From Podarcis bocagei (Eukaryota), in the NCBI GenBank assembly GCA_964188305.1, contig OZ076885.1: a DNA stretch of 64,000 nucleotides. The stretch is one strand, 5' to 3'. How positions within the stretch are numbered: the stretch's first letter is position 1; each line of letters starts with the position of its first letter. The notes below the pieces were generated by a model. That model made no database searches, was not told the origin of the DNA, and saw only the letters and a list, made by a program, of their open reading frames with translations. Positions 16,850-63,285 of the stretch are shown in pieces. A program made the translations under genes and the position numbers.

Positions 16850-17802
16850 ATCTACATGAAACCGCTGGGACAGATCATCAGGAGTTTTGGGGCTGGGTGT
16901 TCACCAATATGCGGATGATACCCAGCTGTACCTCTTGTTTAAATCAGAACCCATGAAGGTGGTGAATGTCTTCTGTGAGCGTCTAGAGGCATTTGTAGGG
17001 TGGATGGCAGTCAATGGATTGAGGTTGAATCCCGACAAGACAGAAGTACTGTTTCTGAGGGATAGGTGGCGGGCAGGTGTGGGGGACTCCTTGGTCCTGA
17101 ATGAGGTTACTGTGTCCCTGAAGGAACAGGTACGCAACCTTGGGGTCATTTTGGACTTACAGCTGTCCATGGAAGTGAAGATCAATTCTGTGTCCAGGGT
17201 GACTGTCTACCAGCTCCATCTGGTATGCCAACTGAGACTCTACCTCCCTGTGCACTGTCTTGCCTGAGTGGTACATGATCTGGTTAACTCCTTACACCAC
17301 TGAAATGCACTCTGCACAGGGCTACTTTGAAGGTGACTCGGAAACTACAACTAATCCAGAATGCAGCTGCTACACTGGTGACTGGGAGCCGCCGCTGGGA
17401 CCATCTAATACTGGTTTTGAAAGATCTGCATTGGCTGCTAGTATGTTTCTGAGTGTTGGTGCAGACCTTTAAAGCCCTACATGGGCTTGGCCCTGTATAC
17501 ATGAAGGAGAGTCTCCACTCCCAGTGTTCAGCCTGGGCACTGAGATCCAGCTGTGAGGTCATTTTAGCAGTTCCCTCCCTGCAAGAAGTGAAGTTACAGG
17601 GAACCAGGCAGAGGGCACAGTGGCACCTGCCCTGTGGAACACCCACCCGTCAGATGTCAAATAGCTAAATAATTACACAACTACACATCAGAAAACGGTC
17701 CTGCATCAGGAAGCTTTTAATGTTTTATATCTCACTGTTTTAATATTATGTGGGAGACCACCCAGAATGGCTGGAGGAATCCGATTGGATGGGTGGGGTG
17801 TA

Positions 17803-23740: not shown

Positions 23741-24679
23741 TCTACCTCTCTTTTAAATCAGAACCAGTGAAGGCGGTGAAGGTCCTGTGTGAGTGTCTGG
23801 AGGCGGTTGGAGGATGGATGGCGGCTAACAGATTGAGGTTGAATCCTGACAAGACAGAAGTACTGTTTTTGGGGGACAGGAGGCGGGCAGGTGTGGAGGA
23901 TTCCCTGGTCCTGAATGGGGTAACTGTGCCCCTGAAGGACCAGGTGCGCAGCCTAGGAGTCATTTTGGACTCACAGCTGTCCATGGAGGCACAGGTCAAA
24001 TCTGTGTCCAGGGCAGCTGTTTACCAGCTCCATCTGGTACGTAGGCTGAGACCCTATCTGCCTGCGGACTGTCTCGCCAGAGTGGTGCATGCTCTGGTTA
24101 TCTCCCGCTTGGACTACTGCAATGCGCTCTACGTGGGGCTACCTTTGAAGGTGACGCGGAAACTACAACTAATCCAGAATGCGGCAGCTAGACTGGTGAC
24201 TGGGAGCGGCCGCCGAGACCATATAACACCGGTCTTGAAAGACCTGCATTGGCTCCCAGTACGTTTCCGAGCACAATTCAAAGTGTTGGTGCTGACCTTT
24301 AAAGCCCTAAACGGCCTCGGTCCAGTATACCTGAAGGAGCGTCTCCACCCCCATCAGTCTGCCCGGACGCTGAGGTCCAGCGCCGAGGGCCTTCTGGCGG
24401 TTCCCTCACTGCGAGAAGCAAAGCTACAGGGAACCAGGCAGAGGGCCTTCTCAGTAGTGGCGCCCGCCCTGTGGAACGCCCTTCCAGCAGATGTCAAAGC
24501 GATAAACAACTACCTGACATTCAGGAGACATCTTAAGGCAGCCCTGTTCAGGGAAGTTTTTAACGTGTGATATTTTACTGTATTTTTGGTTTTTATGGAA
24601 GCCGCCCAGAGTGGCTGGGGAGGCCCAGCCAGATGGGCGGGGTATAAATAATAAATTATTATTATTATTATTATTATTT
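23741..24679 (+). mobile_element. Young 5'-truncated L2-type LINE with an open ORF2 C-terminus (23767-24570)
   Basis: 267 uninterrupted codons with the L2 motifs LNPDKTE, SRLDYCN, LHWLPV; CpGs retained; (ATT)n tail. Confidence 0.92.
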
Positions 24680-26857: not shown

Positions 26858-27265
26858 TGTCAGGGAACTGCCATCAGAGCATCAGGTGGTGGAGGGACTC
26901 AGGCAGGATGAAAGAGACTCAACTGCTGAAGCAGGGACCAGCAGGGGGAGGAGTGATTCTCTGAGGGAATGTGAGCAGGAGGGAGGGCTCAGGGACGCTT
27001 CCAGCGAAAATAGTGGGGAGGTATCTGAGTCTCACATAGGGAGACCCATACCTCGCAGGAAACTGTCACGCCGTGAGTCCAGGAGACGCGTTTCCGTTAA
27101 GGAACTTCTTTGCTGGAAACGCTTCCGCAGGCAGCCACTGTCGGACTCTACTAGTGACTAGAGCAGACATGTCTGAGGAGCTCCGTCACACACGGAGGTT
27201 TGTGGGGGCACACAAACTCTGAGGGAGCACGTTTTCACGCACAAGCAGCTAATCAAACCCTCACA
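26858..27265 (+). repeat. 5' LTR
   Basis: TGTCAGGG...CCCTCACA; no differences from 31920-32327 found by eye. Confidence 0.97.
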
Positions 27266-27267
27266 GC

Positions 27268-27278
27268 AGTCCGACAGT
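27268..27278 (+). promoter_or_regulatory. Self-priming primer-binding site (Tf1/sushi type)
   Basis: AGTCCGACAGT is the exact reverse complement of ACTGTCGGACT at 27137-27147; there is no TGG tRNA-type PBS. Confidence 0.8.
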
Positions 27279-27310
27279 CTTTGTACGCTGCCTGTGCAAG
27301 AGAAGGCATC

Positions 27311-28324
27311 ATGAGCGAACCAACCGGAACCGGAGGAGCAGGGGCTGGAGCTGGTCCAAGCTTGGAAGATAGATACCGAGCGTTGGAGGTTCAACTGGCC
27401 CTGCAGACGGCGAGGCTGGAGGAGAGAAGGGCTCAGGATGCAGACAAGAAGGGGAGAGCCACTCAATTCCCCAGAAAGGTACCAGGATTGGTGCAGAAAT
27501 TTGGGGGGGACCCCAAGGACTACCATGCTTTTAGGACAGAGATGCAATATGCCCTTAATGTGCAGTTCGATGAGTTCCCTGATGAGGAATCGCGAGTTGC
27601 TTTTGTAATTGGGCATCTTGAGAAAGGGGCTAGAGACTGGGTTCGACCCCTAATGGCAACGCACAATGACATACTAAAGGACACAATGAAGTTCTTTCGT
27701 GCAATGGATATCATGTTTTCCAGCGATATTGAGGAAGGGGTGGTGCGCAGACAGCTAATGGCTTGTAAGCAGGGGAGTCGATCTGTCCGTGAATATTGGA
27801 CTGAGTTTACCATGCTGATTCACAGACTGAGTTGGGATTTATCGGCGGCACCCGTTCAAATGCTATTTGAAGAAGGTCTTTCTTCGGGGGTGAAAGACGA
27901 GCTGGCACGGAGCCCCAGGGCGGAGTCTATGGATCAGCTGACCAAATCTGCGCTGACCATAGGAGCGCGGCAGGAGGCAAGAGCCTTGGAGAGGCGGGAA
28001 GGGAGAGGGGAACGTTGGAAGGAGTTCCGCATTCCAGACATTCCTGAGCCAGCTTTCCCGCCGGCAGAGCCGATGGAAATCGGAACAGCGCGCGCGCGCG
28101 CATTTTCAAAAACCAGCGAGGGAGCTAAGAAGGAGGGAAAGGGCCCCCGGAAATGCTATCTCTGCCAACAGCCAGGCCACTTTGCCAGAGTCTGCCCCCA
28201 GAGGAAGGAATGGCAAGGGATGGTGGGAGCTGTTGAGGGGGGAGAAGAAGGGGGAGAGGAGCAGGTAAAAGCCAACGCCTGGTTGCCACAATTGGGGCAC
28301 TGCAGCCAGGCCAAAGAGCAGTGA
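27311..28324 (+). CDS. gag: Gag (337 aa from the first ATG)
   Basis: N-terminal coiled coil, KFGGDP capsid motif, EPMEIG, CCHC knuckle CYLCQQPGHFARVC. Confidence 0.92.
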   Translation: MSEPTGTGGAGAGAGPSLEDRYRALEVQLALQTARLEERRAQDADKKGRATQFPRKVPGLVQKFGGDPKDYHAFRTEMQYALNVQFDEFPDEESRVAFVIGHLEKGARDWVRPLMATHNDILKDTMKFFRAMDIMFSSDIEEGVVRRQLMACKQGSRSVREYWTEFTMLIHRLSWDLSAAPVQMLFEEGLSSGVKDELARSPRAESMDQLTKSALTIGARQEARALERREGRGERWKEFRIPDIPEPAFPPAEPMEIGTARARAFSKTSEGAKKEGKGPRKCYLCQQPGHFARVCPQRKEWQGMVGAVEGGEEGGEEQVKANAWLPQLGHCSQAKEQ

Positions 28325-28332
28325 AAGTGCCC
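28264..28332 (+). promoter_or_regulatory. -1 ribosomal frameshift signal (G GTA AAA + pseudoknot)
   Basis: pol is in the -1 frame; 6-nt spacer; stem1 28277-28286/28302-28311; stem2 28295-28301/28326-28332. Confidence 0.8.
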
Positions 28333-31300
28333 GTGCCAGAAGCTCCTCGACCTGCTCTAGTGATTGAAGTGTCGCTAGAGCTGCAGAATGGGCACCCCCT
28401 AAAAATAAAGGCGCTATTGGACTCAGGCAGCTCCTGCAATTTTATGAGCAAGGAGTTTGCTGCTGAACACCAGATACAGACCATCCCTTTAAGCAACCCC
28501 CTGCAGGTGACCACGATTGATGGCAGGGAGTTGTTGGGAAGAGGAGTCCGCTTGCAGACTGTCCCAATGATAATGAGGGTGGCAAGGCACACAGAACTGA
28601 TAGCGTTTAATGTGGCCACCCTGGGAGGCGCTCCCATTATTTTGGGAATGAGCTGGCTAGCTCTACATGATCCGCTGGTTGGCTGGCATCAAAGAGTGGT
28701 GTCCTTTGGTTCAGCACATTGCCTAGAACACTGCAAAGGGGAGAAGGGTTCAGTAGGGGCCCAAGCCACCCTAGCAGGGACTGAAGTAATGGGGAAGGTG
28801 AAGGTACCACCACAGTATGCAGATCTCAGCGACGTGTTCAGTGAGAAGGAAGCTGACCAACTACCACCTCATAGACCCTTTGATTGTCAGATCAATTTAC
28901 TCCCTGGAGCACAGCTTCCCGTGGGCAAGGTGTATGCCATGTCAGACAGGGAAATGCAGGAGTTGCGAGGGTTCATTGACAAGAACCTGAAGAGAGGCTT
29001 CATCAGAGAGTCCAAAGCAGCAGGGGGGAGCCCAGTGTTCTTTGTGGACAAAAAAAATGCGGACAAGCCGAGACTTGTATGTGATTTTAGGCGGCTGAAT
29101 GCAGTGACTGAACCGGTGGCGTTCCCTATGCCCAGAATTGATGATATTTTGAACATGGTGAGGAAGGGAAAGATTTTCACAAAGCTGGATCTAAGGGGGG
29201 CGTACAACCTGATACGCATAAGGAAAGGGGATGAATGGAAAACCACCATGTTTACCCCTTTGGGGGCGTTTGAATACCTCGTTATGCCATTTGGATTACA
29301 AGCAGGCTCCGCGTGTTTTCAATCTTTTATGAACCACGTGCTGGGCCCTTTGCTCTACAAGAATTGCGTTGCCTTTCTAGATGATGTGTTGGTGTATTCT
29401 GAGAATGAGGAGCAACATGTGAGAGACGTCAGAGAAGTGTTGAGCAGACTGCAAGCCAACAGGCTGTGGGTCAAACTGGAGAAGTGTCGGTTCCATACCA
29501 AGGAGGTGGAATTCCTGGGGTACCGCCTGTCAGACAAGGGATTGGCCATGGATCCCGGCAAGGTACAGGCAGTGCTGGAATGGAAAACACCCAAAACCAA
29601 GAAGGATGTGCAGAGGTTCCTAGGGTTTGGAAACTTTTATCGTAAGTTCATCCGCAACTTCGCCCATCTGACGGCGCCCATCACTGACTGTCTCAGCAGT
29701 AAGAAGAAGTTTGTATGGACGGCGGAGGCGGAGCGAGCGTTTGAGGAACTGAAAAGGGCCTTCGCCTCTGAAGAACAACTTCTGCATGTGGATTTACGAA
29801 AGAAGCTAAGAGTGGAAACAGACGCATCTGACAGAGCCATAGGGGCGGTGCTTCTTCTGCAGCCGGGGAAGGAGGAGTCGGAGTGGCGTCCGTGTGCCTT
29901 CTTCTCGCGGAAGCTGAACAAATCCGAGAGGAACTACACGGTGTACGACCGAGAACTGCTTGCTATTCATGAGGCGTTCCGGAGATGGAGGCATCTGCTA
30001 GTTGGTGCACAACATAAAGTGCAAGTGTGCACGGACCATAAAAATCTAGAGTACTGGAGAACGGCGCGAGTGCTCAACCAAAGGCAGTTGAGATGGGCCC
30101 AAGAGTTCTCCAAATTTAACTTTGAGATTTGTTATGTGCCAGGCCCAGAGAATGTTAGGGCGGACGCTCTCTCACGCAAACCTGAATATTTGGAGGGGGA
30201 GGGAGCACCCGAAGAAACCCATATCATTCCAGAGGACCGCTGGGTGTGTGGGGCGACTTTGGTGGGGCAAAGGGAATTGGTAGAGGGTACGGTGCAGGAT
30301 GCATACGCCCAGGGGAAACTCAGGGATCTCAGAGGGGAGGAAGACAAACCCGGTGGTTTTGAGGAGAGAAATGGGGCATTGTATTATAAGGGAGCGTTAT
30401 ATATACCTGAAGGGGAATTGAGGGAGAAAGTACTCAAGCAGCTGCACGATAGCCCCACAGCAGGGCACTTTGGGCAACACAAAACCATGTGGCTGGTTAC
30501 CAGGGAATTTTGGTGGCCCAAGGTCAGGGAAGATGTGCGGGAGTATGTGAGAGGGTGTGAACAATGCCAAAGAGCCAAGGGGGAGAGGCAGGCGCCGGCT
30601 GGTTTATTAGAACCACTGCCCACACCTGAGAGACCGTGGGAAGCAGTGGCAATAGATTTCATGACTGATCTGCCAAGGTCTAGAGGGAAAACAGCCATCA
30701 TGGTTGTAGTAGACCTGTTAACTAAAATGGCCCACTTCATAGCCTGCTCACATGCGGTTACAGCAGAAGAAACCGCCAAATTGTTTGTAGAGAATGTGTT
30801 TAGGTTGCATGGCGCCCCCTTGAGGGTGGTTTCAGACCGAGGGAAACAATTTACTTCCAGGTTCTGGAGGAAGCTCATGAGCTTACTGCATGTAGAGGTT
30901 AATTTCTCGACGGCCCGTCATCCTGAAACCAACGGGCAGGCGGAAAGAGCAAATGGGGTTCTCCAACAATATTTGAGGTGTTATGTTAATGACAGGGAGA
31001 ATGATTGGGTGGAGAAGCTGGCGTTGGCAGAATTTGCCTACAACAATGCAGAGAACGTGTCCACGGGGATGAGCCCCTTTTTGGCCAATCACGGGTGCCA
31101 TCCCAGAGCCTTCCCAGGGGGGGAGGGGGAGAACTGGAGCGTTCCAGCTGCAGAACAGTTCGTGGAAGAAATGGAAGCGATCCATCGCCAGCTCCAACTC
31201 AACTTAAACAGGGCTAAGGAGGAATATAAGAGGCAAGCAGACAAAAACAGAAGGGAAGGTGAAAGCATCAGGGTGGGGGACCAGGTGTGGCTGTCTACCC

Positions 31301-32223
31301 AAGGGTTGCCATTCAAAGGAGGTTGTAAGAAATTAAGACCCAAAAGGCTGGGTCCGTTTGAAGTCATACAGCAGGTCAATCCAGTGGCTTTCAGGCTCCG
31401 GTTACCGAACCACATGAAGCTGCATCCAGTTTTTCACAGGTCGTTGCTGTCACCGTATAGAGGAGACAGTGAGGGGAGGGTCACTAGGGGACCAGCAATG
31501 GAGGAGAAGGAACACAGCTACCATGTAGCGGAGATCCTCGATTCCAGGTGGAAGGGAGATCAAGTAGAGTATTTGGTAATGTGGGAAGGGGAACCGGAGT
31601 CGGAAAACACCTGGGTTAGGGCAGAGGATGTCAATGACGAGGTTTTAATAGAGACTTTTCATCAGAGGTTCCCACGTAAACCTCAGCCTGTAGCGAGGTT
31701 CCGAAGGGAATACTTTGCCACCACCGACGAGGAAGAGGAGTTGGAGGGGTTCCCAGATTCTGAAGAGGAGGAGGATTCAGCTGGCCAGGACGACGATCGA
31801 TGGAGAGAATTGTTCGAGACGTCAGAAGATGAGGAAGATTCGTTTCGGGGTTTTAGCCCTTCACCTCCCAGGGGGGAGGAATTGGGAGGGGGTGAGGGGG
31901 GCCCTGGAGGGGAAGTGGATGTCAGGGAACTGCCATCAGAGCATCAGGTGGTGGAGGGACTCAGGCAGGATGAAAGAGACTCAACTGCTGAAGCAGGGAC
32001 CAGCAGGGGGAGGAGTGATTCTCTGAGGGAATGTGAGCAGGAGGGAGGGCTCAGGGACGCTTCCAGCGAAAATAGTGGGGAGGTATCTGAGTCTCACATA
32101 GGGAGACCCATACCTCGCAGGAAACTGTCACGCCGTGAGTCCAGGAGACGCGTTTCCGTTAAGGAACTTCTTTGCTGGAAACGCTTCCGCAGGCAGCCAC
32201 TGTCGGACTCTACTAGTGACTAG
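28264..32223 (+). CDS. pol: Pol: protease, RT, RNase H, integrase, chromodomain and extended tail (made as a Gag-Pol fusion)
   Basis: LLDSGS, MPFGL..AFLDD, VETDAS, H..H..CEQC zinc finger, D-D-E core, GPF, chromodomain YHVAEILDSR..YLVMWEG..NTW; no stop codon in more than 1300 codons. Confidence 0.96.
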   Translation, partial: GKSQRLVATIGALQPGQRAVKVPVPEAPRPALVIEVSLELQNGHPLKIKALLDSGSSCNFMSKEFAAEHQIQTIPLSNPLQVTTIDGRELLGRGVRLQTVPMIMRVARHTELIAFNVATLGGAPIILGMSWLALHDPLVGWHQRVVSFGSAHCLEHCKGEKGSVGAQATLAGTEVMGKVKVPPQYADLSDVFSEKEADQLPPHRPFDCQINLLPGAQLPVGKVYAMSDREMQELRGFIDKNLKRGFIRESKAAGGSPVFFVDKKNADKPRLVCDFRRLNAVTEPVAFPMPRIDDILNMVRKGKIFTKLDLRGAYNLIRIRKGDEWKTTMFTPLGAFEYLVMPFGLQAGSACFQSFMNHVLGPLLYKNCVAFLDDVLVYSENEEQHVRDVREVLSRLQANRLWVKLEKCRFHTKEVEFLGYRLSDKGLAMDPGKVQAVLEWKTPKTKKDVQRFLGFGNFYRKFIRNFAHLTAPITDCLSSKKKFVWTAEAERAFEELKRAFASEEQLLHVDLRKKLRVETDASDRAIGAVLLLQPGKEESEWRPCAFFSRKLNKSERNYTVYDRELLAIHEAFRRWRHLLVGAQHKVQVCTDHKNLEYWRTARVLNQRQLRWAQEFSKFNFEICYVPGPENVRADALSRKPEYLEGEGAPEETHIIPEDRWVCGATLVGQRELVEGTVQDAYAQGKLRDLRGEEDKPGGFEERNGALYYKGALYIPEGELREKVLKQLHDSPTAGHFGQHKTMWLVTREFWWPKVREDVREYVRGCEQCQRAKGERQAPAGLLEPLPTPERPWEAVAIDFMTDLPRSRGKTAIMVVVDLLTKMAHFIACSHAVTAEETAKLFVENVFRLHGAPLRVVSDRGKQFTSRFWRKLMSLLHVEVNFSTARHPETNGQAERANGVLQQYLRCYVNDRENDWVEKLALAEFAYNNAENVSTGMSPFLANHGCHPRAFPGGEGENWSVPAAEQFVEEMEAIHRQLQLNLNRAKEEYKRQADKNRREGESIRVGDQVWLSTQGLPFKGGCKKLRPKRLGPFEVIQQVNPVAFRLRLPNHMKLHPVFHRSLLSPYRGDSEGRVTRGPAMEEKEHSYHVAEILDSRWKGDQVEYLVMWEGEPESENTWVRAEDVNDEVLIETFHQRFPRKPQPVARFRREYFATTDEEEELEGFPDSEEEEDSAGQDDDRWRELFETSEDEEDSFRGFSPSPPRGEELGGGEGGPGGEVDVRELPSEHQVVEGLRQDERDSTAEAGTSRGRSDSLRECEQEGGLRDASSENSGEVSESHIGRPIPRRKLSRRESRRRVSVKELLCWKRFRRQPLSDSTSD
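31906..31919 (+). promoter_or_regulatory. Polypurine tract
   Basis: GGAGGGGAAGTGGA directly before the TG of the 3' LTR. Confidence 0.8.
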
Positions 32224-32327
32224 AGCAGACATGTCTGAGGAGCTCCGTCACACACGGAGGTTTGTGGGGGCACACAAACTCTGAGGGAGCACGTTTTCAC
32301 GCACAAGCAGCTAATCAAACCCTCACA
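31920..32327 (+). repeat. 3' LTR
   Basis: Copy of the 5' LTR, followed by the TSD CAAAC. Confidence 0.97.
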
Positions 32328-47337: not shown

Positions 47338-50300
47338 AGGTAGGTCTGGGCCATGTCCAGTTCCAGAGTATTTCCAGAAAAAGCATTTGGGAACCCCTGG
47401 CAAGGAATACATATTGAATGCAAAGGAACCCTGCCACTATTATTTCTGCCTTGCTCTTTTGTGAGTTTGTCAGTGAATTTCTAAAAGAAAACTTTTGGGC
47501 TCTGATACTGTCTGGATATGACTCCACATCCTTCCCTACACCTGGAAGATGCTCTCCTAAATCTCAGACATAATAGAGGTTGAGTATAATAAGTCTGGTG
47601 TGATGAACTCTGCACATGAGCAGGACTGAGCCATGCATGCAGATATGTTCTGATGTGCTCTGGCTCAAATGAAACCAAATTCAAAACCTTGTGTCATGTG
47701 ATATGGCTTAATTTCTAAACAAGAGGTATGGAGTCAGTCTTGCCTGAAAATCATACATGGGTCTTCTTACATGGAATCTCATTCCCTTTCCTTAGATGTG
47801 CAGAGAATAATGGATGTGTATGTTTGTTTTTAGAGAGGAGGAGGCAGTGGCACTCTGCACATGTGTAATTGCAAGTCAGAATGTTACCAGTTGCCACTGG
47901 GTAGAGTTCCCCTCTGTTCTGGAATTCTTACAAGTGGTATTAGCCACTGACGTGAAAGACACTCGTGGCAAGGTTTCTCCCTTGAATTTTTACTGCTTGT
48001 ATTGGCCACATTTGAGGAAAAAACAGCACCCTTGCTGTGCATATCTACCTGCCTTGTTCTTTTTCTGTTTGTACTCTAATTATTTTTAAAGATTTGTACA
48101 CAACAAAAATGCATACGAACATCTCACCTCTTTAATAATAATTCAGAGCAGCATATATAGGTTTCCCAGGTGCTCTGTCATCTTTGTGCACTAAACAGAC
48201 CTGCTTAGCTTCAGAAAGGTTGCTGCACTACGTGCCTTTAGACCACTGCCTTGGCCCTTGTAGGGAAGAACAGTAGCTGCCAGATGTAGCAACATTTTTT
48301 GCCATGGGTGATCATGTTCAGATAATTATGAGATACAGAAACACATTCACATGACTAGCACAGCAGGAACAAGCATTACTCTTTCAATATGCTTTCAGCT
48401 GTAGCTGTTGCTGTCTTTGCGCTTTAAATCAGCAAAAGACAACTTGTATGCTGTGTTTTCTGTTTGGTCTAATGGTGTTTGTCTGTTTTGTCAGTGGAGA
48501 CTATGACTAGGGAGAAAATAATACAGATTTTGCCTGGGTTAAGTTTTGTCTGTCTGAAAATTAATTGTAAATATTTGCTTGTTACTTGTACCTGCAGTGA
48601 TGCAATAAATGTTGGTACTAAAAGCCTCCCAAAATTTCCACGAATGTAAATAGAAACATTACATTGCATTGGATCCAAAGGGTGCCTTTGCAAATGCCAT
48701 GTGTGCAACGTAATTTTCCCTCTCCCTCTGAATGCGTTGCCTGTCACAAGCACCTTCTGTGAGAGGGGAGAATTACCCAGATTTGGGTGGAAGTATATGG
48801 GCTGTTTGAACACTGTTTGAGACTCCATTATAGTATTTCTTCTTGATTAAAAATGTTCTATGCAAGAAAATTCATAGTTTTAGATTTGCAGTGATCTCAT
48901 TTTCTAATACCCACCTTTTCAGGTTTGCTTATCTGGGCAAGATGTTTTAGACCATCACTATTAATCATGATGGTATTTAGTGACTCTAATCAGGTATTGC
49001 GAAATTCATTAACAGGTCATTTTTCCTGAAGAAGAAAGGGGAAAAGCAAATGAAGAAACAGGCTACTCCCTCACTGGAAGCATTTGGGAATTTCTGGTCT
49101 CAAAAGCAGAATCATAATAAAGAAAATTCTGACCTTGAAGAAAAGGAAGAGCAGCAAATAACAAGCTATTGCAATGGAAAGGCTGAGAGAGACCAGGGCA
49201 GTTATTGGAACTGAGTGGGCTACTTTTTTGCTTTTTTCTTTGAAAGCACAAAGCCTGTAGAAAAGCCATGTGTTCCAATGCTTTCTGACATTCTGCCCCC
49301 TAAGAGAACTTTTCTTATGGAAAGCACTTCGAACAGTGTTGCTTGTATTTAACATTGTTGGAATTATATACTGTTGCCCTGGTTTCCATAAACCAAGTAG
49401 GGCTGGTGGGGCCCATAACTACAGTTAGCTTTAGGAAGAGTCATAAGGTCTCTAAAGCTTTCACTTTACTGGTTAAAGATCAAGGTCAGTATAGTATTTA
49501 GTTCAGAGTTCTCCCTTCTGTAAGAAATATGGGTCAGGTAGACTGCATGAGGGAACATAAAGTTGACTGTTCATAGGATCTGATTGAGGCACTGGATTGA
49601 AGTAACATAGGCTTTTGTAATTCTATCCAAATACAGTATTTATTATAGCAATTAGGGGGTTTTGCTGTCGTCTTTTAAGAGAGGGGAGGCTATTCTAATT
49701 TTTTTTATTTCTGAGTTCTCTCGTGTGTGTCTCTGAAGTGTTCCATGCCAGTAAGTTGACTGCATGTTGTTTGACAACGTTGATACTGTTGACTATTCCA
49801 TGATGCCAAGAATGCCAGTGTGTCTCAATGGCAACTTACTTTTTACATTTCATTATGGTATTATTTATCAGCAGGTGAGGGCTGCTTACACCCTACTCTG
49901 TAGTGGTCAGGCAAATTTAGCACCAGAGAAAACTTCTCTTATTGGCTGCCATCAATAACTACAGGCATGCTCAAATAGGAACGGTCACCTGTTACATGCC
50001 TCACTATTTAGGAGCACCTGTGATTCCACCATGCTTGCAGTGGGAAGCAGGAAGTGCCCCCTTTATTTATGCATTTCATGGAGAAAGTAGATAGAGATTT
50101 TATTTATTTTAAAAATCTATTTCAAAACGCTAGATGAATGGTATGGATTCTGCCTTACTAGAGTGGAACTCTGCTAACAGAGTATGCTTCTGTTGGCAGA
50201 GGAGAGGTGGCGGTTTCACCAATTGCCCCTTCCCCCTGCAATTTTATAAAATCTGCTCTGGAGGGTTGGCATGGGGTGGCGGCACTGTGGGTTGCATGGG

Positions 50301-50561
50301 GAAAGACCTCCATTTCCGTAAATGGGAACCTCTGCTGGATCTGCTTTGTGGAACAAAATGTCTGGCTTTTATTCTGTTTTAAATATTTATTGTGTATGCA
50401 CCGTATTTTTCGCCCCATAAGACGCACTTTTTCCCCTCCAAAAATGAAGGGAAAATCTGGGTGCGTCTTATGGGGCGAATGCAGGCTTTCGCTGAAGCTT
50501 GAAGAGCGAGAGGGGTCGGTGCGCACCGACCCCTCTCGCTCTCCAGGCTTCAGGAAGATAT

Positions 50562-50893
50562 CCGCCGCCCAGGCAGCCCTGTGGGAGGTCCCACAGGGTT
50601 GCCTAGGCTGCGGATAGCAGCCTGCTTCTCGGAGCGTCGGGCGCCCTGAAGGCAGAGCGCCCGACGCTTCGGGAACAATTCCGCCGCCCAGGCAGCCCTG
50701 TGGGAGGTCCCACAGGGTTGCCTAGGCTGCGGATAGCAGCCTGCTTCTCGGAGCGTCGGGCGCCCTGAAGGCAGAGCGCCCGACGCTTCGGGAACAATTC
50801 CGCCGCCCAGGCAGCCCTGTGGGAGGACCCGCAGGGATGTCTAGGCTGCGGATAGCAGCCTGCTTCTCGGAGCGTCGGGCGCCCTGAAGGCAG
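50562..50893. repeat. 119-bp tandem repeat, about 2.8 copies
   Basis: CCGCCGCCCAGGCAGCCCTG recurs at 50562, 50681 and 50800. Confidence 0.92.
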
Positions 50894-51441
50894 GGTGCGC
50901 AAGGCTTGGGGCGGCAGCGGACTGCTTGCGTGCACCTAGAAGCTTGGGGCGTGCTGAGGTCAGCGCGCCCCAAGCTTCTGCATGCCGGCAAGCAGTCCGC
51001 TGCCGCCCCAAGCCTCCCGCACCCGGCAGGAGGTCCCGCCGGGTGCGCAAGGCTTGGGGCGGCAGCGGACTGCTTGCGCGCACCTAGAAGCTTGGGGCGT
51101 GCTGAGGTCAGCGCGCCCCAAGCTTCTGCATGCCGGCAAGCAGTCCGCTGCCGCCCCAAGCCTCCCGCACCCGGCAGGAGGTCCCGCCGGGTGCGGGAGG
51201 CTTGGGGCGGCAGCGGACTGCTTGCGCGCACCTAGAAGCTTGGGGCGTGCTGAGGTCAGCGCGCCCCAAGCTTCTGCATGCCGGCAAGCAGTCCGCTGCC
51301 GCCCCAAGCCTCCCGCACCCGGCAGGAGGTCCCGCCGGGTGCGCAAGGCTTGGGGCGGCAGCGGACTGCTTGCCGGCACGCAGAAGCTTGGGGCGCGCTG
51401 AGCTCCGCACGCCCCAAGCTCCTGGTGTAGCGCAGCGCACC
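50893..51441. repeat. 148-bp palindromic tandem repeat, about 3.7 copies
   Basis: GGGTGCG..AGGCTTGGGGCGGCAGCGGACTGCTTGC recurs at about 50893, 51041, 51189 and 51337. Confidence 0.92.
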
Positions 51442-52921
51442 TGGGGGGAAAATAAAAAATTTTTCCTTCATTTCCCCCCCTAAAATCTAGGTGCGTCTTA
51501 TGGGCCGGTGCGTCTTATGGGGCGAAAAATACGGTAGTTAGCTACCTCAAGAGTCTTTGAGAAATGGGATAGAAATATTTTAATAAATGATTCAATCTGA
51601 GGTTTTACAATTGGGCAGGTTGTTACATCTTTACTTGTTTTAGAAACCTCCTTATTGTTTCCAAGCTAAACTTATTTAATATATTTATTCTTCTACCATG
51701 GTCACTTTCAACTTAAATAAACCTTCCCTCCAGTATATTATTGTCTCCTCTGCTGTGTTTGTATAGTAATTTTGCTTTATTTTTTGCTGTGGTTTTAATA
51801 AAGTTAAACAGACCTGACTTTTTCAACCACCACACCTGAGATGAGTTTTCAATTTCTGTGCTTCTTTTAATTGCTTTTCTTCACTTGTGTTTGACTACTG
51901 TATTTTGAGAGAAATGAATTCTAAGTTGGATGGATCTTTCCCAATGAAGTCTTGTCAGTACATTCTGTGTACTGTCAGTGCACAAGAAATGCAATATGAA
52001 TACTACTTGTGACTATAGATTTGCTTATTCAAGACCATGTTAATTTGTTGGTTTAGGACTTGCTCAATGTAATGCTTTCTGAATACTGTAATATATTTGT
52101 GTTGAGGCTGTCTACTATACACTTGATTAGGAAAATAAATTGAGGAAGGATTAATAATAATGTCTGCAACATTGGTTCTTCATATGCTACAGAATATAAC
52201 TGACAGTTTCCACAGTCAGGAATACTGAGCTTGGAGGGAATGGTTGTTCCAGCTGTGAAACCGCTTAGTTTAATTATGAGCTGGAAGCTCCACCCCTTTC
52301 TGGCTCTGACAGACCCTGATCTAGGCAAATGAGCATACATGCCCCTCCCACTTCCTAAGTGCAGCTAGATCCTGCCTATTCCTGTTATTAGGGGATTGGG
52401 ATGGTTCCCAAATGACTGATGTTGAGCCCTCTGGTTCTAGGACAGAGATGTTTGGATCCAGTGGCTCCTCAGTGCCACTGGCAGTGCAGAGATATATACT
52501 AGTGGCATATAATTATGCACAAAAATAACTTAGTGACTTAAAAAACAACAACTTGCAAAGTTCCCCACAAAGTTTGTTGACACAAATAAAGTTAAACAGC
52601 TTTACCTTCTCTAAACTGTCAGTGAATACCTATGATTGTTTAATCTAAATATAGACATTGAGGGGGAAAGAATACATCACTACATAAATTTACAATATAA
52701 TGATGAAATGGGGAAGTTTTCAAAGATTGCAGCTTCTATTTGTCTCAAGCTTCCCCTCTCCCCTTTTTAGGGGGGGAATACATTATTTTTCTACAAAATT
52801 GTCCTTTGTCCCCTATATGAAAGTGGCAAGTACCCAAACTTATTTCAGGTTTGAATAATATTGTTCAGAATTGGATTTGATCTTATGAAATTGGGACTTG
52901 CAAATTGGGGTGGATGGAAAG

Positions 52922-61955: not shown

Positions 61956-62155
61956 NNNNNNNNNNNNNNNNNNNNNNNNNNNNNNNNNNNNNNNNNNNNN
62001 NNNNNNNNNNNNNNNNNNNNNNNNNNNNNNNNNNNNNNNNNNNNNNNNNNNNNNNNNNNNNNNNNNNNNNNNNNNNNNNNNNNNNNNNNNNNNNNNNNNN
62101 NNNNNNNNNNNNNNNNNNNNNNNNNNNNNNNNNNNNNNNNNNNNNNNNNNNNNNN
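61956..62155. other. Assembly gap
   Basis: Run of N. Confidence 1.
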
Positions 62156-63098: not shown

Positions 63099-63285
63099 NN
63101 NNNNNNNNNNNNNNNNNNNNNNNNNNNNNNNNNNNNNNNNNNNNNNNNNNNNNNNNNNNNNNNNNNNNNNNNNNNNNNNNNNNNNNNNNNNNNNNNNNNN
63201 NNNNNNNNNNNNNNNNNNNNNNNNNNNNNNNNNNNNNNNNNNNNNNNNNNNNNNNNNNNNNNNNNNNNNNNNNNNNNNNNNNNNN
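63099..63285. other. Assembly gap
   Basis: Run of N. Confidence 1.

Follow-up and report, generated by a model that had tools for sequence, protein, structure and literature searches.

The integrase of an intact Ty3/Gypsy chromovirus in the lizard Podarcis bocagei carries, shortly behind its chromodomain, two tandem (F/L)xGF motifs which are very probably selected functional elements, as judged from their conservation in related subfamilies. Their layout is that of the TND-interacting motifs (TIMs, also IBD-binding motifs or IBMs) of host proteins which bind LEDGF/p75 and HRP2. The sites at which retroviruses and retrotransposons insert are decided by the tethering of integrase to chromatin factors of the host. 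That a peptide in the integrase tail can serve as the tether is a known principle (the MLV integrase tail binds the BET ET domain, Ty5 integrase binds Sir4, and Ty1 integrase binds AC40). To our knowledge, only a handful of integrase tethers have been described. Full-text literature searches returned no paper on a LEDGF/TND-type motif in the integrase of an LTR retrotransposon.

The Element and Its Surroundings

In the window, which is the whole 64,000-nucleotide stretch of DNA that was analysed, the element is made up of the following parts.

5' LTR: 26858..27264, + strand; 407 bp with TG...CA ends, identical to the 3' LTR; a 5-bp target-site duplication (TSD), CAAAC, flanks the element
gag open reading frame (ORF): 27200..28324, + strand; Pfam Retrotrans_gag (capsid-like region) and zf-CCHC (CCHC zinc knuckle)
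pol ORF: 28321..32223, + strand; 1300 aa with no interruption, in the order PR-RT-RNaseH-IN-SH3-chromodomain-tail
3' LTR: 31920..32326, + strand; 407 bp with TG...CA ends; pol ends 300 nt into it, and the 100 residues encoded there close with an Arg-rich basic stretch

Pfam recognized a protease, reverse transcriptase (RT), RNase H, the integrase zinc finger and core, a Tf2-type SH3-like domain and a chromodomain (residues 1067-1116) in Pol. The element is a Ty3/Gypsy chromovirus and is intact: TG...CA LTRs, a TSD, gag followed by pol, the PR-RT-RNaseH-IN order and a chromodomain at the integrase C-terminus are all present. Taken together, the 100% identical LTRs, the TSD, the open gag and pol frames and the Pfam domains mark a very recent chromovirus insertion. 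The nearest database proteins were Podarcis muralis models named 'Gypsy retrotransposon integrase-like', and near-identical sequence was found in sequencing runs from at least 10 organisms. One further P. muralis model (P0011, 'vomeronasal type-2 receptor 26-like') opens with a piece of an integrase of this family (72 residues, 81% identical); the gene model is probably chimeric, or else a piece of the element has been exonised.

Among the ORFs of at least 110 aa in the window, no clear exon of a host gene was found at the insertion. Two ORFs elsewhere (16887-17267 and 23767-24570) have the string RLNPDKTEVLF in common and, by the look of their sequence, resemble RT fragments of a non-LTR (LINE) element. 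The GC-rich stretch at 50200-51500 has overlapping ORFs on both strands which repeat one Pro/Ala/Arg-rich peptide, resembling a tandem repeat array. Runs of N are located at 61956-62155 and 63099-63285.

Two Motifs Behind the Chromodomain

The C-terminal part of Pol, as far as the start of the 3' LTR, contains these features.

Integrase chromodomain: 31519..31668, + strand; Pfam PF00385, modelled with a pLDDT of about 90, aromatic cage incomplete
Motif 1, FRREYFATTDEEEELEGF: 31699..31752 (residues 1127-1144), + strand; helix FRREYF, linker ATTDEEEE, then LEGF
Acidic inter-motif spacer: 31753..31800, + strand; variable among subfamilies
Motif 2, WRELFETSEDEEDSFRGF: 31801..31854 (residues 1161-1178), + strand; helix WRELF, linker ETSEDEEDS, then FRGF
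Purine-rich stretch: 31855..31919, + strand; ends in the polypurine tract, adjoins the LTR start at 31920 and is translated within Pol

Translation of 28321-32223 (+ strand) gave both motif strings exactly as the first-pass annotation had quoted them. The pair starts 10 residues past the chromodomain and stops 66 nt short of the 3' LTR. In both motifs the helix anchors are spaced i, i+4 (F1127 and Y1131 in motif 1, W1161 and F1165 in motif 2). The linkers that follow are acidic and, at 8 and 9 residues respectively, lie within the range of TIMs. As a pattern match only, CK2-type sites (S/T-x-x-D/E) fall within the linkers at T1134, T1135, T1167 and S1168. The annotation had taken both sites as (F/L)xGF copies. 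Motif 2 (EEDSFRGF) does contain FxGF, with D where the strict consensus D/ExExFxGF has E, whereas motif 1 of this copy (EEEELEGF) has L in place of the first F of the consensus. The two motifs align with each other and, from their sequence, clearly appear to be a tandem duplication.

In the 64-kb window, read in six frames, a loose form of the pattern (an acidic run, then [FL]xGF) was found at these two sites only. When the 80-residue tail was shuffled 200,000 times, one full motif (aromatic helix, acidic linker and hydrophobic-xGF, a pattern set after the motifs had been seen) arose in 0.25% of shuffles and two in 0.001%. Since the pattern is post hoc and the copies are duplicated, these chance figures are not to be multiplied and the weight of the evidence lies on conservation. 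The AlphaFold2 model gave the tail a pLDDT of about 45-55, against about 90 for the chromodomain, as expected of a disordered stretch after a folded domain. Within it, short helices were placed exactly on ARFRREYF and on REL of WRELF, as a prediction only.

Past motif 2, Pol continues through the polypurine tract and 100 codons (300 nt) into the 3' LTR (31855-32223). A C-terminal motif which likewise extends into the 3' LTR is described in plant CRM elements, and the lizard Pol C-terminus resembles them in this respect. The LTR-encoded end is Arg-rich (RRKLSRRESRRRVSVKELLCWKRFRR), and the same end was found in P. muralis P0001 and P0002. It is nearly invariant among subfamilies, a conservation which is confounded because the segment is itself LTR sequence. 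This basic end could be a second contact with chromatin or DNA.

Conservation of the Motifs in Related Subfamilies

If the motifs matter, FxGF should be kept in related families against a variable background, as the first-pass annotation had proposed, and this is what identity by segment, codon comparison and the tree all gave. The relatives with a named source are all Podarcis, a single genus. Both motifs are kept in three Podarcis subfamilies whose identity to the window copy is 69-89% across this region. The inter-motif spacer, by comparison, differs among close subfamilies by an 8-residue indel and many substitutions, and the best-supported differences between species are located in this same spacer (31753..31800). 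Among five sequences in which both motifs could be aligned, mean pairwise identity was 0.79 in the chromodomain, 0.75 in motif 1 and 0.67 in motif 2, but fell to 0.31 in the spacer and 0.23 after motif 2. The 12 anchor positions scored 0.85 and the remaining columns 0.47 (permutation p = 0.0005).

FxGF of motif 2 is invariant in the relatives, with R or L at the x position. The first hydrophobic position of xxGF in motif 1 is L, M or F (M in one subfamily). P0004, from a sequencing run, has FWEEQFATTDEEEEDFVGF and WEAVFESTDDDSSSFRGF, and its sister subfamily P0016 (Podarcis) has FWEEEFGTTDDKEDFVGF. Motif 1 of these two sisters provides the sole matches to the strict D/ExExFxGF in 97,055 residues of retrieved proteins. 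The most divergent bearer of motif 2 is P0005, from an ENA assembly and 51% identical, with WKTVFESDENEDTDFLGF; a search for its relatives returned P0005 alone, as a single sequence. Further away still, P0015 and its kin (Podarcis, 44% identical) carry FFDDWLFTPTLSASTFQGF.

Codon comparison with two relatives revealed that the key F, G, F and W residues are retained despite synonymous codon changes. The constraint therefore acts on the protein and not on a cis-acting nucleotide signal beside the polypurine tract. A maximum-likelihood (ML) tree was built from the SH3-like and chromodomain region of the 70 best-scoring rows; P0016 was among the sequences omitted for too short or too weak a match. 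In this tree all 13 motif bearers fell into one clade with 100/100 support. The sole member of the clade without motifs is P0022, a decayed copy whose motif region is deleted. The window copy and the P0015 group are separated by about 1.8 changes per site in the SH3-like and chromodomain region, a distance over which a neutral disordered segment would not be expected to survive.

Database searches were also made with the tail. A phmmer search of the PDB with the 70-residue tail returned no match at E <= 10. With a profile of the 13 motif instances, hmmsearch of the PDB (E <= 10) retrieved no IBM-containing chain, the only matches being chance ones to CylK at E of about 7; this search is a weak test, because short motifs carry too little information. 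An ESM Atlas feature search with the tail returned no usable match.

A Second Lineage with a Non-acidic Linker

The second lineage consists of seven subfamilies (P0015 and P0156-P0161) which are 68-81% identical. Their motif peptide is DWLFTPTLSASTFQGF. In these subfamilies DWLFTPTLSASTFxGF is invariant except at x, which is Q, R or H, and the sequence past it is variable. The linker TPTLSAST is rich in Ser and Thr and has no acidic residues, which come only after FxGF; in this respect it departs from the acidic linker of TIMs. Any binding to a TND in this lineage would thus rest wholly on phosphorylation. About 25 residues past FxGF a further invariant aromatic block (SYWW, then PE..W) was observed, and further downstream of it a recurrent xGFEH.

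The Chromodomain Cage and the Post-chromodomain Segment

The chromodomain itself has also changed in these elements. Alignment to HP1 (1KNA) gave Y, W and then E, where HP1 has Y48, as the cage residues of the window copy, so that its chromodomain lacks the Y-W-Y cage of group I. The first cage position varies among subfamilies. In the second lineage the W is lost too, with R, E or K at the second position and T or F at the third, and Pfam calls no chromodomain. The third position is Y or F in 113 of 117 representative relatives in which chromodomain and tail could both be recognised. E is found there in three only, the same three that have acidic FxGF tails, and since the motif bearers are one clade this association of cage loss with tail motif counts as one evolutionary event.

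Elements targeted by a chromodomain (those with a group I chromodomain, such as MAGGY, and Tf1) belong to the same class and have it at the same position, the integrase C-terminus. The Y-W-Y cage of group I reads H3K9me, in contrast to the cage of the lizard clade. The latter resembles the group II type, which has reportedly been described in plants only. From its sequence, the loss of the cage fits a shift of targeting from the chromodomain to the tail.

The segment behind the chromodomain also differs widely among relatives. A basic, AT-hook-like RGRP (for example RPRGRPRR) directly follows the chromodomain in 39 of the 117 representatives, many of them fish-type (P0012-P0058 and others). 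As these tails occupy the position of the FxGF tail, the post-chromodomain segment looks like a slot for exchangeable chromatin-contact modules. Two other squamate chromoviruses, Rhineura P0019 and Vipera P0049, have acidic tails without FxGF.

Comparison with TND-Interacting Motifs

TIMs are defined by an obligate short helix anchored by F, V, L or I, a linker of 8-16 residues which is acidic, rich in D, E, G, S and T and phosphorylated by CK2, and FxGF (PMC9987994). FxGF is present in, and required by, all known LEDGF and HRP2 partners, and several host proteins have two or three TIMs each (PMC9987994). The consensus was given as D/ExExFxGF, and the MLL1 helix has its anchors at F129 and F133, an i, i+4 spacing (PMC8022399). 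In the fly, DFxGFDE of JIL-1 binds the LEDGF-type domain of JASPer. The FxGF mode of binding LEDGF-type domains is therefore old and widespread in animals, from flies to humans.

The first-pass annotation had recognized this layout in the integrase tail, and the comparison bears it out: a short helix is followed, as published, by an acidic linker of 8-9 residues with Ser/Thr and CK2-type sites, and then by (F/L)xGF (PMC9987994, PMC8022399). The likeness to host LEDGF partners (MLL1, JPO2, POGZ, IWS1, ASK and MED1, and fly JIL-1) further includes the disordered context, the aromatic helix anchors at i, i+4 and the tandem copies. There are also differences. The lizard carrier is the integrase of a mobile element instead of a host transcription factor. 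Moreover, the window copy is off the strict D/ExExFxGF by one position in each motif.

Some other motif classes were compared as well. The G3BP-binding FGDF was rejected since its G is misplaced, and FFAT (VAP) since it requires two adjacent aromatics followed by D-A. The spacing of the AP-2 WxxF-acidic motif does not fit. An MDM2-type FxxxWxxL is not found in the first lineage, and the basic-hydrophobic ET-domain ligand of MLV integrase gave no fit.

What the Motifs May Bind

Selection on the motifs has to be separated from chance and from the identity of the partner. The tail is encoded by a GA-rich stretch immediately ahead of the polypurine tract, and the tails of Rhineura P0019 and Vipera P0049 are acidic without FxGF. 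The E, D and G residues might thus be filler encoded by a purine-rich region, with the likeness to FxGF arising by chance. This is highly improbable and already disfavoured by the sequence comparisons: TTY (F) codons within the purine-rich stretch have been kept over about 1.8 changes per site, with synonymous changes, while the flanks fall to 0.23-0.31 identity, and shuffled tails produced one motif in 0.25% and two in 0.001% of cases. An acidic tail could also act within the protein, by folding onto the SH3-like domain or the LTR-encoded Arg-rich tail as an autoinhibitory or DNA-mimicking segment with its aromatics as contacts. The strongly acidic residues 1133-1174 do lie upstream of a strongly basic C-terminus (RRKLSRRESRRRVSV), and both are conserved among subfamilies. 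We nevertheless think such an arrangement improbable. In the AlphaFold2 model the tail, at a pLDDT below 55, is not confidently docked on the chromodomain, and the second lineage is without any acidic linker. Moreover, the acidic residues vary while F, G and F are fixed, which fits binding in a pocket better than the masking of charge.

The motifs could, on the other hand, be functional and selected yet bind something other than a TND, such as another host factor (for nuclear import, for histone or chaperone binding by acidic-aromatic contacts, or for stability control) or a protein of the element. Conservation proves constraint but names no partner, the PDB profile search retrieved no IBM, and the second lineage, with its non-acidic linker, does not conform to the definition of TIMs. 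Against these points, all parts of the pattern fit one published class (the i, i+4 aromatic helix, the linker length, the CK2-type sites and FxGF with a free x), and FGDF, FFAT, WxxF-acidic and the MLV ET ligand do not fit. A partner outside the TND family is for these reasons held to be rather unlikely.

The reading in which the partner is a TND such as that of LEDGF or HRP2, and the motifs tether integrase to transcribed chromatin, is the leading candidate on the strength of the comparison with host partners, which we rate just short of evenly balanced. Patterns as short as these are degenerate, and this counts against it. The motifs would then act as TIMs/IBMs, as short linear motifs under selection at the disordered C-terminal end of integrase. 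The short aromatic helix would enter the first hydrophobic pocket of the TFIIS-N-terminal-type domain (TND) of the H3K36me3 readers LEDGF/p75 or HRP2. The acidic linker, whose Ser/Thr residues would probably be phosphorylated by CK2, would lie on the basic patch, and FxGF would fill the second pocket. The integration complex would thereby be tethered to transcribed chromatin, with the two tandem copies providing avidity, as in host proteins with several TIMs. With the chromodomain cage lost, targeting may have passed to the tail motif or been redirected by it. Partner, phosphorylation and integration-site effect are what we infer.

Relation to Known Integrase Tethers

The first-pass annotation had drawn a parallel with HIV-1, which needs correction in one respect. 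The target proposed for the lizard element is the same as for HIV-1 integrase, but the mode of binding would copy the cellular LEDGF partners and not the structured interface of HIV-1. The likeness lies in the proposed outcome, which is integrase on H3K36me3-marked transcribed chromatin by way of the LEDGF IBD/TND (PMC9987994). HIV-1 integrase binds LEDGF at a pre-formed, structured site on its catalytic core, independently of phosphorylation, whereas in the lizard element a linear motif in a disordered segment would take this part. If this is true, the two converge on one target by distinct mechanisms. A likeness in form is found in MLV, Ty5 and Ty1, where target choice is set by a short peptide, located within or close to the C-terminus of integrase, that binds a protein of host chromatin or transcription. 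These systems differ in partner and in motif chemistry, and none of them has an acidic FxGF motif.

Implications

Put together, these comparisons lead us to propose, tentatively and as a possibility more than an expectation, that a clade of active vertebrate LTR retrotransposons has gained tandem host-type LEDGF/HRP2-binding motifs in the integrase tail and lost its methyl-lysine cage. Heterochromatin reading would thus have been exchanged for tethering to H3K36me3, with a target convergent with that of lentiviruses and reached by mimicry of a host motif. If true, this would be the first retrotransposon to copy the docking signal of its host's own LEDGF partners, and the LEDGF pathway would have been exploited at least twice by distinct molecular means. 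It would also make available a vertebrate system, natural and apparently still active, for comparing the gain of the motif and the decay of the chromodomain with insertion landscapes.
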